This document shows, in pieces, positions 19,171 to 56,367 of a stretch of DNA of 64,000 nucleotides; the stretch's first letter is position 1, and each line of letters begins with the position of its first letter. The notes under the pieces are model-generated. The model made no database searches and was not told the origin of the DNA. It saw only the letters and a list, made by a program, of their open reading frames with translations. Origin of the DNA: Epithemia pelagica (Eukaryota; Protista; Bacillariophyta). The position numbers and the translations under genes are program-made. Where the stretch lies: assembly GCA_946965045.2 (NCBI GenBank), contig OX337242.1, forward strand, positions 2,542,001 to 2,606,000, written 5' to 3'.

Positions 19171-20025
19171 ATGTCCGGAAGAGGCAAAGGAGGCAAAGGT
19201 CTCGGCCCTGGTGGCACCGATAGAGGTGAAGACAGCGATCCCTTGACATTCATTATTATAATCGGCTTTATCTTTCTGGTGATTGGATTCTTGTCACGGC
19301 TACTTGGCCGACGTGCCAAACGCCGTTTGAATCCAGGAACTGGCGAGGCACAAAGCAAGTGCCATCTCTTTGCTTCGGATACAAAAGATCCAACACTTGG
19401 TCACATGAAGGATGAATCACCAAATGCTTCTCTCATTACCGTTCAGGCAACCTTTCAGGAAGTGATTGGTAGCATGGAAGACGGAACAAACTTTTCGTCC
19501 GATACTCTTCGAACCATGTACATTTCCTTATTGTCGGGTCTGGTAGATTCAGACAGTGAGGATCCACAAGACTTTGATATTGACCAAATGGTTGATGAGG
19601 CAATGCGTTTGATTGATACCAATCAAGATGGTACAATTGATTTGTCTGAAATGCAAAGCATTCAGTTGCCTCGTCAATCCGGAGAATTCATCTTTGACGA
19701 CGTGGTGGCCTGCTCCGACACGACCTCTTCTTCTTCCTTGACCGCATCGGGGGAAACTTGTGTCACGGCGGACCAGGTGGTGGACTTTCTCAATGTGTTC
19801 TATGGAGGAGCTCAAGTTGTGAGTCCCGAATTGGCCCAGCACATTCGAGAGACGAGTGGACCGGATACCTGTTATACACGAGCGGAATTTGATGCAGCTT
19901 TTTCCACTCCTTCTGGTGCCCTGTCGGCAGCCTTTTCGTTTTCGGGACCGGAACCTTCCTTCTTGTCCTTTGCCATTCATTTTGGAGCGGCCTTGCTAGT
20001 CTTTTGGTTGGCTTCTCCCTTTTAG
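19171..20025 (+). CDS. EF-hand/4-Cys membrane-anchored family member 1, with histone H4-like N-terminus
   Basis: 284-aa intronless ORF; MSGRGKGGKGLG; TM helix; EF loop DTNQDGTIDLSE; hydrophobic C-terminus; paralogous to three other ORFs in the window. Confidence 0.85.
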   Translation: MSGRGKGGKGLGPGGTDRGEDSDPLTFIIIIGFIFLVIGFLSRLLGRRAKRRLNPGTGEAQSKCHLFASDTKDPTLGHMKDESPNASLITVQATFQEVIGSMEDGTNFSSDTLRTMYISLLSGLVDSDSEDPQDFDIDQMVDEAMRLIDTNQDGTIDLSEMQSIQLPRQSGEFIFDDVVACSDTTSSSSLTASGETCVTADQVVDFLNVFYGGAQVVSPELAQHIRETSGPDTCYTRAEFDAAFSTPSGALSAAFSFSGPEPSFLSFAIHFGAALLVFWLASPF

Positions 20026-20280
20026 AGAAGACGCAATGAGAGTTACAATGTCCATGTCCTCCCCTTTTAGCGTTTTAGCCATTGTAGTCAACTGGACAGA
20101 ACGAGATTGGTAGATTGATTTCTTTAAGTTCGGTGTTATCTTTCTGCATTTTGTACAGGTAGATCTGTGTGGTTCATGTCGTTGAAGCGCCATCCGCTTT
20201 TCTAGTGCGCAAATCAGAGTCACCACATTGGAATGCTGTGACAATTGGACCTTTTCTTCCAATTCAAGACAAACAAGCGG

Positions 20281-21080
20281 ACGTTTCCAGGGTCATTCTT
20301 CCAGATGAGAACACTCCTCGGAGACTTGGAGTTTCATTGTCATTTCTGGGAGGACGCTTTCTTCGTGGTCTGGTTTTCATTGAATGCCAATCACGAGAAA
20401 AGAAAAAAATCCCGAAACAAGCAAGACACGTTGGTTCCACTGCGATAGCACAATCGGTTGGGAAGATGAGTGACTGTGTTCATTCCAAAAGTCTCAGTCG
20501 GTGAGGATCATGAAGAACACGATGAATGCGACACACAAAAGGAGTATTGAGTGAAGAAAGGATCGAGCGAAGCGAGTGTCAGTCTTCCCTTCTCTGACGC
20601 AAGTGCCGAACATGGAACATGGCACCCACTGAGGAACCTTCCTGCCTTGGAAAATGTTGAACTAGATGCAATTGTGTCTACCGTCAAGACGCCTTTTCTC
20701 CTGAACGTTGATCATCTGAAAAAGATCGTGTCTACTTGATCCAACGAGAGAATGAGTAGGCCATGCGGTGCCAGAGAATTAGGGTTCCAAGCCAGAAGAG
20801 CGGCAAAGCGTTTCCGTCGTTGGCTCTCGTCATCATTGTGATCGGTTCCCAGAACGATTTGAAGTTTCGCCCGGAGGACGTTGGCATCGCGCATGCATGG
20901 ATTTGTCACATGTACTATTACTTAGTCTTGGTGCTGAGTTGGGGCACTTGCGTGACACGCGTGCAAGCGCTCACATTCATTCCCGCTCACAAAATGACGC
21001 CATGGGACTGGAAACCTTAAAAATCAAGAGGGTACAACGGGAATTTGCCACTGCACTCGCCCTTGGACCATCTCGTCGTA
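20281..21080. repeat. Diverged dispersed repeat; second copy at ~31661-31962 plus 38593-39070, split by Copia-2
   Basis: Shared blocks such as gagacttggagtttcattgtc and acgccttttctc(c/a)tgaacgttgatcat...gaatgagtaggcca...ccagaagagcggcaaag. Confidence 0.7.
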
Positions 21081-21344
21081 TTCCACTTTGTTGGCCTCCC
21101 AACCCAACAAAGTACGATCGTGGAACCTCTTACGAGAGACCTGAATTCAACCACAGACCGCTGAGAGTCTCACCACTCGACCAAATCACGAAGGCAAAAG
21201 AAGGAAACACCTTCCATGTGAAGATCCCCTGATACTCATAGTAGCACCTAGAAACCGAGGTCTACGAGCGCACACTACCTAAGTTCCAGGTACGTAAGAA
21301 AACAAATAATATACTATGATTGAGCTTTTGCATAGAGTCTACTC

Positions 21345-53646: not shown

Positions 53647-54564
53647 CTATTCCGGATGGGAGAGATCGAGCATCCACTGAACAGGACTTTGTGGTGTCGG
53701 TGAAGACGAGGAGGACAATCCACCGACAAAGAGAGCGGTTCCGACTCCAAACACGAGGATCAAGACAAAGGACGGATCGGCCTGCGCCGCAACGCCAGCC
53801 GACAAGGTTGTGCTGCTACCAAAGGCAGTTTCCCATTCGGCTCGTGTGTAGCATGCATCGACACCACTGGTATCCATAAGATGCTGCTTCAATTCGGAAC
53901 CGACAATCTCTTGGCCTCCATAAAATTGGTTCAAAAAGTCCACCACATTGGGAACCGACACACACGTTTCACCAGATGCGGTCGTGGTCGTGGTAGAAGT
54001 ACAGGCGACCACATCGTCAAACAAGAATTCTCCTGCTTCAGGCGGAAGCTGAATCATTTCCATTTCCTTGGCATTGATAATGCCATCTTGGTTGGTATCC
54101 ACAGTAGCAAGAGCCGTATCAATCAAAGTTTCAACATCCTCTTGAACACTTGCATCTTCTGTATCAACCAAACCAGACAACAACGAGAGGTACAGCGGAC
54201 GAAGAGTGTCGGTTGAGAAATCCGTGCGTTTCTCTATATGAGTGACAACATCTTGCAATTGCTGCGGAACAGGTGTCGATTCCGGAGTAGAGGCATTGTC
54301 GCCCGACATTTCGGATTCCTTGGCAGGAAGAAGGAGACATTGTCCCTCTGTTTCTTCTTGTGTCGTCGTCAAGGAACGTCGGGCAAGAAGACAAGGATTG
54401 ATAAAATGCCAATTCACGGGTGTACCCAACACCTTGCAGAGACCCTTAGCTAAGGATTCATTTCCACTCAAATCCAACAAGATGAATACGATATAAAGGA
54501 CAATTAAAAGGGGTGATTGTCTGACGGAATCAGCGGCAAGGGGGGTCAAGGACAGGACCAACAT
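53647..54564 (-). CDS. EF-hand/4-Cys family member 3
   Basis: TM helix; RRSL; EF loop DTNQDGIINAKE; GEFLFDDVVAC, GETCVS, DACYTRAE. Confidence 0.8.
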   Translation of the reverse strand: MLVLSLTPLAADSVRQSPLLIVLYIVFILLDLSGNESLAKGLCKVLGTPVNWHFINPCLLARRSLTTTQEETEGQCLLLPAKESEMSGDNASTPESTPVPQQLQDVVTHIEKRTDFSTDTLRPLYLSLLSGLVDTEDASVQEDVETLIDTALATVDTNQDGIINAKEMEMIQLPPEAGEFLFDDVVACTSTTTTTASGETCVSVPNVVDFLNQFYGGQEIVGSELKQHLMDTSGVDACYTRAEWETAFGSSTTLSAGVAAQADPSFVLILVFGVGTALFVGGLSSSSSPTPQSPVQWMLDLSHPE

Positions 54565-55367
54565 GGTGATGGTTTGGTTGTTGCCCTTTGTGGTATCCGA
54601 GATTCTGGATCCAAGCACCTCCGTGTGACAAGACGCCACAACTACTTATTCATCGACACGCGAGCTGTGTCCTCATTGGTGATTGGCGATGGCGGTCGTT
54701 GCTTAGGTATCACAAATCACAACATGGTGGATTTGGAAGTTGGAAGCCACATGCATGGAAGGAAGGAATGTATGGGAAAAACCTGTGAGACCACCCTCTT
54801 CAACTAGCACACACTATGTTGAATTGACCTAACGACAAGAGGCAACGAAACTGGGAACCGGCGAAAGGAAGGAAGAACGTCCATGGTGGTTGTGTTTCTC
54901 GTTGCTGGCATGTAACCTTATTCATCGCCACCGCCCCTGGGCACGCGCGATGCTGTTCCGGCATTAAAAGTCGCTTATAAGTCGCTTATAATGACTCGAT
55001 TATTCACCGCTTCTGCGACCTCTAATTAGTGCGACCATTTTTTCATTCCTGAGCACGACTCATCAACCTCTATGGAGGTAGCCCAATAAACGCTAGAGCT
55101 ATTACTCCTCCTTACACAAAGTTTCTTTCTGGTCCTGCCTTTTCCCTCTTTTGTATCGCAGTGGAAGTTCGCAACTTGTGTTCTCCAACTTCCTCCTGTT
55201 GTCTCCCTACAAAAGGTAACTAGTTTTCACATAACATGGAACTACTTTGGTATAATTAATGAAGTTTCCTAACTACGGAATCGAATTGAAAGCGCAGCAT
55301 GGAGAGAATCAATCGGACATGCAGATTTTGATCATTGTGCTGACCATGGTGTGGATCATCTTGTCAT

Positions 55368-56367
55368 TTAGAAAGGAAGAGCCAATCCGGAGACAAAGAA
55401 GGCCGTTCCGACACCAAAGGCAGCGCTCAAGACAAAGGAAAGATCGGGCATGGTCGCATATCCAGCCGACAAGGTCTCAGCGTCGCTAAAGGCAGACTCA
55501 AACTCGGCATGGGTGAAGCACGCATTGGGTCCACTCTGTTCGACAATCTTCTGGGCCAAGTCCGCACCAACAACCTCGCTACCCGCGTAGAACTCGTTGA
55601 GCAAGGTGATTACATTGTCCGGAGTGACACAAGTTTCACCATTGGCAGAAGTAGTGGGAGCAGTGCACTCGACAACGTCCTCGAAAAGGAACTCACCGGC
55701 TTCACGAGGAAGCTGCATGCCTTCGATTTCGAGCATATCAATCTTGCCGTCTCCATTCGCATCAATGGCCATCAAAGTGTCTTCGACCAAAAGTTCAATG
55801 TCTACTTGAGTGGTATCATCTTCTTCATCGACCACCAAACCGGACAACAAAGACACGTAAAGGGAACGAAGGGTGTCAACCGAGATATCGGTCTGATCTT
55901 CCATGTTCTTCATAATTTCTTCCAGGTCTTGTTGAGAAGCAGCCGATTGCGTGGCATCGGCGGCAGCATCTTCGGCAGCTCCCTTGGATTCAAAAAGTTG
56001 GCACTGGCCCTGTCCGTTGGCGGCCAAATCACGGTTTCCTGTGTTTCTCTTCTGTTTCCTTGCTGCTTTGTTTTTGGTTCCTGATTTCTACCACCCAGTC
56101 TCTTTTTTCACAAGTTTGTACGTGGTCCTTCCCATAAATTTCTTCATCCACTTAAAGGCCGTATGGTTCTTCGTCATGCGGAACCAAGACATGAGAAAAA
56201 TCAGCAGCATCATCAAAGCCGAATCATAGGGCCAGTTGCCGTGTTTACCACTACCGCTTTGATCAACACCGGATTGTTCCAAGGCGTGGGTGCGGCAACC
56301 TGAGTTGCGGCAACCTCGAAAGCAACGGGAGCAGCGACAGGAGCGGCCATGATAAGAATACGACGGT
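55368..56367 (-). pseudogene. EF-hand/4-Cys family member 4; in-frame TAG at 56088-90 and 5' end cut by Copia-3
   Basis: ORFs 56088-56444 and 55368-56027 share a frame; EF loop DANGDGKIDMLE; upstream TM helix ALMMLLIFLMSWF. Confidence 0.7.

Follow-up and report, generated by a model that had tools for sequence, protein, structure and literature searches.

ORF1 to ORF4, four open reading frames of a 64,000-nucleotide stretch of Epithemia pelagica DNA (the window), belong to a real gene family whose members are kept by purifying selection. We favour, with a probability of roughly 0.45, the reading in which its products have an ER leader that can be swapped, followed by an RXL pro-domain, a Ca2+-binding ectodomain stabilised by disulfides and an anchor of GPI type; most probably the proteins lie on the outer face of a membrane or on its vesicle-lumen side. 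The ORFs are present at 19171 (+), 23671 (-), 53647 (-) and 55368 (-), and their parts are given below in window coordinates.

19171..20025, + strand: ORF1, a complete 284-aa member with a G/K-rich N-terminus
19243-19293, + strand: ORF1 hydrophobic leader
19321-19329, + strand: ORF1 RRL
19360-19362, + strand: ORF1 Cys1 (C64)
19474-19509, + strand: ORF1 degenerate EF1
19615-19650, + strand: ORF1 canonical EF loop, DTNQDGTIDLSE
19711, 19759 and 19870, + strand: ORF1 Cys2-4 (C181, C197, C234)
19921-19932, + strand: ORF1 LSAA, then a spacer and the hydrophobic tail to 20022
23671..26025, - strand: ORF2, 784 aa
24529-25890, - strand: ORF2 (SGPSG)n tract
24385-24441, - strand: ORF2 hydrophobic helix
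24310-24318, - strand: ORF2 RRV, with basic stretch
24286-24288, - strand: ORF2 Cys1
24031-24066, - strand: ORF2 EF loop, DLNKDGIIDVKE
23968, 23929 and 23818, - strand: ORF2 Cys2-4
23761-23772, - strand: ORF2 LSAG, with the tail to 23674
53647..54639, - strand: ORF3, 330 aa as listed, with a GTG start
54562-54564, - strand: ORF3 probable ATG (M26), where the assembly's own gene call P0067 starts
54475-54513, - strand: ORF3 leader
54370-54378, - strand: ORF3 RSL
54337-54339, - strand: ORF3 Cys1
54064-54099, - strand: ORF3 EF loop, DTNQDGIINAKE
54001, 53962 and 53851, - strand: ORF3 Cys2-4
53794-53805, - strand: ORF3 LSAG, then a hydrophobic segment and a 25-aa polar extension
55368..56033, - strand: ORF4 core, 219 aa from TTG
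56025-56033, - strand: ORF4 RDL, whose L is the listed TTG start
56001-56003, - strand: ORF4 Cys1
55728-55763, - strand: ORF4 EF loop, DANGDGKIDMLE
55665, 55629 and 55518, - strand: ORF4 Cys2-4
55461-55472, - strand: ORF4 LSAG; the tail ends LPF
56088..56222, - strand: detached ORF4 leader with the hydrophobic segment (S)ALMMLLIFLMSWF and a basic stretch; it shares the frame of the core

Pairwise alignment reveals a core of ~200 aa common to the four ORFs, with 45-61% identity and 60+ invariant columns, far above chance, which bears out the four-member family of the original prediction. Among ten family members sharing 38-61% identity, 28 columns are invariant. The core contains one canonical EF loop, four invariant Cys and an R-x-[LVAI] ahead of the first Cys, and the motifs SLLSGL, LP..GEF.F.DVV.C, GE.CV(T/S), C(Y/F)T.AE and LSA(G/A) were all found in ORF1-ORF4. 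The four EF loops had been quoted exactly, each at the position given above. Likewise, the four Cys are present in every intact paralogue, as predicted, and are lost only in truncated or stop-bearing copies; Cys2 and Cys3 flank a loop rich in Ser/Thr whose length varies. Again as described, three ORFs terminate in PF, the exception being ORF3 with its polar extension. A Pfam scan recognises a single EF loop only, and with EF-hand_1 just ORF1 clears the curated cut-off, barely (25.8 versus 25.4 bits). We found no Pfam family beyond this loop, no named homologue and no published description, in keeping with the claim that the family is undescribed.

The relatives of these genes are few. A word search of 5.8 billion proteins gave 9 matches, 2 of them the window's own, while an exhaustive profile search of 1.84 billion representative proteins returned about 25 relatives; the profile matches below E ~1e-9 lie mostly around the EF loop only (profile positions ~50-115). 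All relatives come from ENA, and the 9 contigs traced, out of 9, belong to assembly ERZ21939226. Silicon-transporter genes lie near family paralogues, and this assembly is therefore that of a diatom. No member was found in a JGI metagenome scan or in other diatoms of the searched libraries. So far, the family is restricted to a diatom lineage and found in one genome assembly.

Within this lineage, intact and broken copies coexist. ORF1 has an intact copy, P0066 (contig ctg1301l of the same assembly), which is 97% identical with a dN/dS of 0.34. The closest relative of ORF2 is P0003, whose core is 87% identical (dN 0.078, dS 0.307); DNA homology between the two begins only at the basic stretch (window position 24354). 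A 96% identical copy of ORF3 on another contig, P0004, ends before the tail. Many copies are broken; besides P0004, they include P0017, with a TGA at the Cys4 codon and two other Cys lost, P0006, with Cys4 lost and 5' frameshifts, and the ORF4 leader. In this last case an in-frame TAG (56088-56090) lies downstream of the helix and most of the basic stretch, and the core ORF contains no ATG, so that, as assembled, ORF4 could give a product joining leader and core only by splicing or read-through; GT-AG introns that keep the frame can be drawn in many ways. Furthermore, numerous fragments adjoin the intact copies, and one subfamily comprises 18 near-identical proteins within a ~5-kb dispersed repeat.

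Such decay and repetition, like the finding of no family copy of transcriptome origin in the protein collection, would be expected if the family were largely non-functional, that is, a recently expanded set of decaying, lineage-specific ORFs that are unexpressed or have no conserved role. We consider this very improbable, since all pairs of intact copies show a core dN/dS of 0.15-0.35 over 200 codons, including the unsaturated ORF2/P0003 and the near-identical ORF1/P0066 pairs, the 28 columns stay invariant among such divergent members, and intact copies keep the EF loop ligands along with all four Cys. The family would evolve by birth and death, with rearrangement at the 5' end.

The fold of the core was approached by structure modelling and profile comparison. 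The AlphaFold (AF2) model (pLDDT 70.6, pTM 0.65) consists of 8 helices with paired short strands on the loops, arranged as four helix-loop-helix units in two lobes. Nearly all fold matches are to EF-hand proteins, though they are weak: the 50 best Foldseek matches are all calmodulin-type proteins, the ESM Atlas neighbours are EF-hand clusters, and the N-lobe profile matches the EF pairs of secretagogin and CDPK (E ~3e-4). The C-V-T and C-Y-T motifs had been proposed to be two dead EF loops. The model places two short strands exactly on C-V-T and C-Y, between helices, and the C-lobe resembles EF-hand pairs with Z 4.1-5.8, values below the noise guideline of the tool (Z < 8); on the other hand, profile comparisons detect no sequence similarity of the C-lobe to any EF-hand or to its own N-lobe. 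The modelled structure thus weakly suggests that these regions are dead EF loops.

Compared with the EF-hand superfamily and its calmodulin-like domains (PF00036/PF13202/PF13499), the core shares one canonical 12-residue loop (D-x-N-x-D-G-x-I-D-x-x-E), an N-lobe that aligns to the first EF pair of secretagogin/CDPK, the modelled four-unit, two-lobe arrangement with paired loop strands, and its fold neighbours. It differs in having one competent loop, a C-lobe without sequence similarity, four invariant Cys, a third unit with a long Ser/Thr loop that varies, and a hydrophobic leader and tail; no family model spans the whole core. EF-hand pairs outside the cytosol with conserved cysteines, as proposed here, occur in the disulfide-stabilised EC domain of SPARC/BM-40, in the CREC family and in the lumenal EF-SAM of STIM. 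To our knowledge, none of these has detectable homology to the family or joins an RXL pro-domain with a GPI-like tail. The tail-anchored calneurons (CaBP7/CaBP8), whose active EF-hands are the first two only, also have a four-EF-hand-type domain with dead C-lobe loops and a hydrophobic extreme C-terminus, but are cytosolic and lack an N-terminal hydrophobic leader, an RXL and the conserved Cys quartet; we know of no sequence relationship to them beyond the EF loop.

As to the region preceding the core, the original prediction described a hydrophobic helix, a basic stretch and an RXL-like site. RRL, RRV, RSL and RDL do precede the first Cys, but in ORF4 the TAG separates the helix from the core. 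The N-termini are unrelated upstream of the helix, as had been noted; however, the hydrophobic helices themselves are also unalignable. The leader spans 13-21 residues, reaches a maximal Kyte-Doolittle (KD) value (13 residues) of 1.2-3.6, being weak in several members, and has a charge bias of +8 to -5 with no consistent direction among the 18 entries scored. Because its length, hydrophobicity and charge bias all vary, a fixed transmembrane helix is a poorer fit than an ER signal, and in its behaviour the leader resembles an ER signal that can be exchanged more than it does a conserved membrane anchor.

The opposite topology, the main alternative and one that we regard as possible but less likely than the favoured reading, would place the variable N-terminus outside or in the lumen, as in a receptor or adhesion protein, with the first helix spanning the membrane, the basic stretch inside, the core serving as a cytosolic EF-hand-like Ca2+ sensor and the tail as a second span of tail-anchor type; such proteins would be similar to the calneurons. 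In 5 of the 18 entries (ORF1, the detached ORF4 leader, P0003, P0019 and P0063) the C-flank of the leader is far more positive than the N-flank (+5 to +8), and by the charge-difference rule the core would therefore be cytosolic, against the lumenal reading; however, this bias does not extend to the whole family, as 10 of the 18 entries have one that is negative or close to zero. In P0017 a clear signal peptide stands at the N-terminus and a Cys-containing region of ~130 aa separates it from the hydrophobic segment, and the N-termini of P0025 and P0063 are Cys-rich. In L002, a clear signal-peptide ORF lies upstream of P0007 in the same frame, with one TGA between, and a strong TM helix follows; if the two are one gene, this would be a type I copy with a cytosolic core. 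However, both P0017 and the L002 fusion contain in-frame stops and may be decayed chimeras, and the P0017 subfamily, which has the clearest signal peptide, also has the weakest internal hydrophobic segment (13 residues, in most members broken by K/R), a poor stop-transfer. Receptor families are usually variable outside and conserved inside, and EF-hand domains are mostly cytosolic; on the other hand, the four invariant Cys and the conserved RXL would have no obvious cytosolic role. Finally, ORF2, for which neither a signal peptide nor a signal-peptide-like upstream ORF was found, would have to translocate ~520 residues; with such a length ahead of its helix, only the N-in/C-out orientation is tolerated.

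The C-terminus bears on the same question. It is built of a small-residue triple S-A-G, a polar spacer and a hydrophobic tail, and 19 of 21 members end within this uncharged tail (the last 15 residues average a KD of 1.1-2.4), in agreement with the predicted GPI-signal-like build. The G-V-G-T-A small-residue pattern conserved in the tail of one subgroup, the ORF3 extension and the ending of P0013 (...SRLSSSS) would be less expected of a discarded GPI signal than of a real membrane helix; for the opposite topology, such a G-x-G-x-A tail and the ORF3 extension likewise suggest a real helix. Against this, the tails are only moderately hydrophobic, that of P0005 very weakly so.

Returning to the RXL pro-domain of the favoured reading, R-x-[LVAI] occurs in 18 members, tabulated by eye from their sequences, in flanks that cannot be aligned; 12 of the 18 have a strict R-x-L. 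In diatom biosilica proteins up to ~30 aa after the signal peptide, with RXL at their end, are removed by proteolysis (PMC5525289, PMC5647440), and the motif conserved here matches this published "signal peptide + RXL domain" organisation, as anticipated from diatom cell-wall proteins. As in Silicanin-1, SAPs, silaffins and cingulins, the hydrophobic segment at the N-terminus leads, within ~9-40 residues, to a basic stretch that closes with R-x-L, a Cys-containing domain comes next, and membrane attachment is predicted (PMC5525289, PMC5647440). The differences are that the sequences are not homologous, that the mature domain is EF-hand-like where theirs are NQ-, Ser- or Lys-rich, that a GPI-like tail at the C-terminus provides the anchor in place of a TM helix plus cytosolic domain, and that many leaders are internal and not N-terminal.

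A double anchorage had also been proposed, as in tetherin/BST-2, where an N-terminal TM and a C-terminal GPI similarly provide hydrophobic ends around an extracytosolic Cys-containing domain, in that case a coiled coil and not an EF-hand. What speaks for a lumenal core and for a GPI-like tail applies equally here, and the leaders of ORF1, ORF2, P0003, P0013 and P0007 are strongly hydrophobic over 19-21 residues. Nevertheless, a lumenal or extracellular core held at both ends, by a C-terminal GPI and by a signal-anchor that stays uncleaved at the N-terminus, is doubtful and, in our estimate, improbable. Unlike tetherin, the family has a probable cleavage motif between leader and core, conserved and of the kind that marks propeptide removal in diatoms (PMC5525289, PMC5647440). 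Cleavage at this RXL would remove the N-terminal anchor, and the double-anchor picture therefore conflicts with the processing idea of the same prediction. Moreover, the leader is unconserved in sequence, length and strength, and several members (P0019, P0014, the ORF4 leader) have only a short signal-peptide-like segment at the extreme N-terminus.

Under the favoured reading, an exchangeable hydrophobic leader of 13-21 residues, with or without extra N-terminal sequence, would direct entry into the ER. The basic RXL domain, ending in R-x-[L/V/A/I] 4-14 residues before the first Cys, would then be removed by the protease that acts on diatom biosilica-associated proteins, by analogy with these, and the swappable N-terminus discarded. 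The mature domain of ~160 aa would be a calmodulin-like, two-lobe structure of four helix-loop-helix units, as the model moderately supports, with the second loop as the only canonical Ca2+ site, a C-lobe with two degenerate loops bearing Cys at position 7, and four Cys that probably form two disulfides. The S-A-G triple, a spacer of 6-10 residues and 14-24 uncharged, moderately hydrophobic residues reaching the last residue would constitute a GPI-attachment signal, or else a terminal membrane helix, keeping the domain attached to the SDV or plasma membrane, on its lumenal or extracellular side. The family would thus consist of lineage-restricted diatom paralogues whose products are secretory-pathway, membrane-attached, Ca2+-binding proteins, for which Ca2+ may serve not as a signal but as a ligand with a structural or cross-linking role.

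Four open reading frames of the window share a core, and all of them lie where the original prediction had placed them:

19171-20025, plus strand, ORF1
23671-26025, minus strand, ORF2
53647-54639, minus strand, ORF3
55368-56027, minus strand, ORF4

The alignment of the four products confirms the proposed common core, which extends over about 200 residues with 45-61% identity and more than 60 invariant columns. Four cysteines are invariant (C64, C181, C197 and C234 in ORF1 numbering, hereafter Cys1 to Cys4), and every motif quoted in the prediction, including the four EF loops, is present and could be mapped to coordinates. 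Three of the four proteins carry PF at the C-terminal end, and ORF3 has 25 polar residues beyond its hydrophobic segment.

The N-termini were predicted to be unrelated upstream of a hydrophobic helix. This holds for the sequence beyond the helix; the helices themselves also cannot be aligned between copies. When ORF2 is compared with its closest relative, P0003 (P numbers denote relatives from the ENA protein collection), nucleotide homology starts only at the basic stretch. The start of ORF3 is probably an internal ATG (M26). The ORF4 core reading frame has no ATG, and an in-frame TAG (56088-56090) cuts it off from its hydrophobic segment and from the larger part of the basic stretch, both of which lie upstream; by enumeration, dozens of frame-keeping GT-AG introns could remove this stop, none of which stands out. 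ORF1 begins with MSGRGKGGKGLG (19171-19206, plus strand), a stretch that is kept in P0066 and is identical to the N-terminal tail of histone H4. Since ORF2, P0005 and P0006 have similar G/K-rich runs (GGKGGKGG and the like) behind their hydrophobic segments, this identity may be a low-complexity feature of the family rather than H4 mimicry. ORF2 contains a tandem repeat of about 1.36 kb (24529-25890, minus strand), which is predicted to read as some 90 copies of SGPSG and is open in four of the six frames. In the interval separating ORF1 from ORF2, a 420-aa ORF (21345-22607, minus strand) encodes a glycosyltransferase family 2 domain and, after it, TPR repeats.

A word-based search of 5.8 billion proteins matched nine, two of which are the window's own, and an exhaustive HMM search of 1.84 billion representatives with the core recovered about 25 family members or fragments, below which ranked generic EF-hand proteins matching mostly around the loop only. 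All members come from ENA, and the nine contigs fetched all belong to the assembly ERZ21939226; neither the word search, nor the exhaustive profile search, nor a scan of JGI metagenome contigs found a relative outside it. The family had been predicted to be undescribed, and this view stands: no named member is among the proteins found, no family model covers the core, and literature searches found no paper on a diatom EF-hand/GPI/RXL family. Judged by sequence, the family belongs to none of the known groups compared. It is real and lineage-restricted, combines known parts in an unusual way, and is known from one assembly.

The family shows birth and death. In ORF4 the stop severs the leader, i.e., the upstream hydrophobic segment, from the core. 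P0017 has a TGA exactly at the codon of Cys4 (6016-6018 of L004; L numbers denote fetched stretches of paralogue-bearing contigs) and has lost two other family cysteines. A selenoprotein was considered in this case, and no SECIS element matched within 3 kb at E<=1; because of this result and the two further losses, we read P0017 as a decayed copy. P0006 has lost Cys4 and is frameshifted in its 5' region, while P0004 is truncated. Short degenerate core fragments in both orientations adjoin intact or near-intact members (L002 7943-9211; L004 7190-8422; L005 17091-17512). Finally, an ORF at 5179-5994 of L002 encodes a clear signal peptide (MVSRRFYFLFVSIIIPVLA/QP) plus about 250 further residues in the same frame as P0007 (6001-7053), the gap consisting of one TGA and two codons; the two may represent a decayed or spliced fusion.

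The fetched contig ctg1301l provides direct evidence for an exchange of 5' ends at these loci. The window matches this contig at 95-98% up to about 19157, within a lipoxygenase-like flank, and the position of ORF1 is occupied there by P0003, whose core resembles that of ORF2 and whose leader is of a third type. P0066, a copy of ORF1 devoid of this flank, is found more than 20 kb further on the same contig, beyond a Copia element; its match to the window begins at 19165. Since the first match ends at about 19157 and the second begins at 19165, the junction falls 6-14 nt upstream of the ORF1 start codon. The stretches concerned are the following:

19045-19170 of the window, rearrangement junction
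9800-10001 of L005, rearrangement junction
7995-8010 of L009, rearrangement junction

The P0011 subfamily consists of 18 proteins with at least 90% identity, several of them truncated. It is carried on a dispersed unit some 5.05 kb long; the copies at three loci are 97% identical, and their flanks are unrelated:

3842-8907 of L006, P0011 unit
4890-9898 of L007, P0011 unit
4848-9897 of L008, P0011 unit

No TIRs or LTRs were found in the unit, and its other ORFs are without Pfam match and low-complexity in look; the unit could be mobile and as yet unclassified, or else a segmental duplication. Silicon transporter genes (PF03842) are located on the minus strand at 3457-5109 of L003 and 1-1045 of L006, within 5-7 kb of P0013 and P0011. 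This proximity may be coincidence, but the presence of such genes near two paralogues marks the host as a diatom.

Substitutions in the core bear on whether a family with so many broken copies is largely non-functional, a reading that we consider very improbable. Over 200 ungapped core codons (Nei-Gojobori), dN/dS is 0.15-0.35 for all computable pairs. The unsaturated pair ORF2/P0003 has a dN of 0.078 and a dS of 0.307, and ORF1 compared with P0066, its 97%-identical copy on another contig, gives 0.34 from 17 differences. Furthermore, 28 invariant columns persist among ten members at 38-61% identity. These columns and the dN/dS range together indicate that the core evolves under purifying selection.

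An EF-hand is defined by a 12-residue Ca2+ loop (ligands at positions 1, 3, 5 and 12, glycine at 6, a hydrophobic residue at 8) and flanking helices. The canonical 12-residue loop occurs in all four ORFs, and the helices flank it in the AlphaFold model. With the Pfam families EF-hand_1/5/6/7, a single loop only is recognised, and ORF1 alone exceeds a curated cut-off, barely so (EF-hand_1, 25.8 vs 25.4 bits). Profile positions 22-88 match the first EF pair of secretagogin and CDPK with E-values of 2.5e-4 to 4e-4. EF-hands come in pairs, and that of the N-lobe consists of a degenerate plus a canonical EF-hand. From profile and model, this lobe is an EF pair in which one site is live, and Ca2+ binding is predicted there.

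A first AlphaFold run on 10 sequences, which still included the disordered ends, was poor (pLDDT 57); a second, restricted to residues 83-256 of ORF1 and using 20 family sequences, reached a pLDDT of 70.6 and a pTM of 0.65. The second model consists of eight helices arranged as four helix-loop-helix units. Paired short strands lie on the degenerate first loop and the canonical loop of the N-lobe, and the short strands of the C-lobe fall exactly on C-V-T and C-Y. The best 50 Foldseek matches are all calmodulin-type with both lobes aligned, at non-significant E-values of 0.02-0.13. A Foldseek-independent structure search aligned the C-lobe (model residues 85-165) with EF-hand pairs at Z 4.1-5.8, lower than the tool's safe level, and an rmsd of about 3 A over 60-70 residues; the ESM Atlas neighbours are EF-hand clusters. 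At the sequence level, the C-lobe profile matched nothing among PDB sequences, and an internal duplication of the lobes was rejected since hhalign gave no signal between C-lobe and N-lobe (probability 0.2%). The C-lobe had been proposed to contain a pair of dead EF loops in which Cys occupies loop position 7: the strands of the model and the weak fold matches agree with this proposal, sequence comparison gave no signal for it, and we consider it plausible but only weakly supported. The core belongs to the EF-hand superfamily by fold, and the existing family models all fail to cover it.

Most members possess a hydrophobic segment ahead of the core, positioned either at the very N-terminus or behind 20-520 unrelated residues. 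It spans 13-21 residues, and its KD hydropathy runs from very strong (3.6) down to weak (1.2). A tabulation by eye of the sequences of 18 members shows, behind this segment, an Arg with L, V, A or I two residues on, located 4-14 residues before Cys1; the site is a strict R-x-L in 12 of them, and its flanking sequence is unalignable. Diatom biosilica-associated proteins carry a signal peptide and, behind it, up to about 30 residues that terminate in RXL and are removed, hence absent from the mature protein (PMC5525289, PMC5647440). The position of the RXL ahead of the mature domain is the same here, and Silicanin-1 and the SAP proteins have the same leader-plus-RXL layout as the family. A plastid bipartite or mitochondrial presequence was considered as well and rejected, as inspection revealed no Phe-type cleavage motif behind the hydrophobic segment. 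The visual impression of a HYR-like N-terminal domain in P0006 and P0017 was discarded, as Pfam returned nothing at E<=1.

At the other end, 19 of 21 members have a tail that is uncharged and moderately hydrophobic (14-24 or more residues, KD 1.1-2.4) and runs to the C-terminus. Ahead of it stand a conserved triple of small residues, usually S-A-G, and 6-10 polar residues as a spacer. In a GPI-attachment signal, the residues at omega to omega+2 are small, and a polar spacer then leads into a hydrophobic tail that extends to the very end of the protein. Judged by eye and from simple hydropathy, the C-terminus has the textbook build of such a signal, ORF3 and P0013 being exceptions, and would provide a putative anchor.

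The indicators of topology conflict between members. The reading that we favour, with a probability of about 0.45, is a secretory, RXL-processed and GPI-type-anchored protein whose core would be lumenal or extracellular. The conserved RXL and the GPI-like tail would both suit this arrangement, as would a variable Ser/Thr loop between Cys2 and Cys3. The invariance of the cysteines, already noted for the window, extends to all intact relatives, and their retention in every intact copy and loss in broken ones only would point in the same direction. So may the ORF2 helix, preceded by about 520 residues without a signal peptide, and the textbook signal peptide of P0017, whose subfamily has the weakest, charge-interrupted internal segment. 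Both signal-peptide copies, P0017 and the L002 fusion, contain in-frame stops. Extracytosolic EF-hands of this kind, possibly stabilised by disulfides, recall SPARC/BM-40.

The main rival reading, which is somewhat less likely, takes the core as a cytosolic EF-hand sensor held by two membrane helices. EF-hands usually reside in the cytosol, and a strongly positive C-flank (+5 to +8) in 5 of 18 entries would retain the core there; however, this charge bias is not family-wide, ranging from +8 to -5 across the 18 entries. Also in favour of a cytosolic core are the G-V-G-T-A pattern that one subgroup has in its tail, the polar extension of ORF3 beyond the tail, and the L002 signal-peptide ORF in frame upstream of P0007 with a strong TM helix, a TGA lying between. 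Such a protein would resemble the tail-anchored calneurons. Tail-anchored sensors cross the membrane once, at the C-terminus, lack an N-terminal signal and have their N-terminal domain in the cytosol. The family does possess a hydrophobic segment at the C-terminus, but most members have an N-terminal hydrophobic leader before the core, and P0017 a signal peptide. Permanent anchoring at both ends in a tetherin-like manner, as originally predicted, is improbable because the conserved RXL separates the leader from the core.

We tentatively envisage genus- or species-restricted, extracellular or SDV-lumenal EF-hand pro-proteins, which would have an exchangeable leader, be trimmed at the RXL, contain two disulfides (one in the dead EF-loop pair), be held by GPI, and diversify by start-codon recombination. 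We know of no described protein that combines an exchangeable leader, an RXL site, disulfide-locked EF-hands and a GPI anchor. Membrane-attached lumenal components are few in diatom wall and silica-vesicle biology, and literature searches found no paper on one of GPI or EF-hand type. If the host lineage is an Epithemia-type nitrogen-fixing diatom, the expansion could relate to the wall, to raphe adhesion or to symbiont-housing membranes. In a single assembly, the locus illustrates how 5' ends change in a gene family, and a Ca2+-binding, disulfide-locked surface module, if true, would open a new approach to Ca2+-dependent wall assembly or adhesion.
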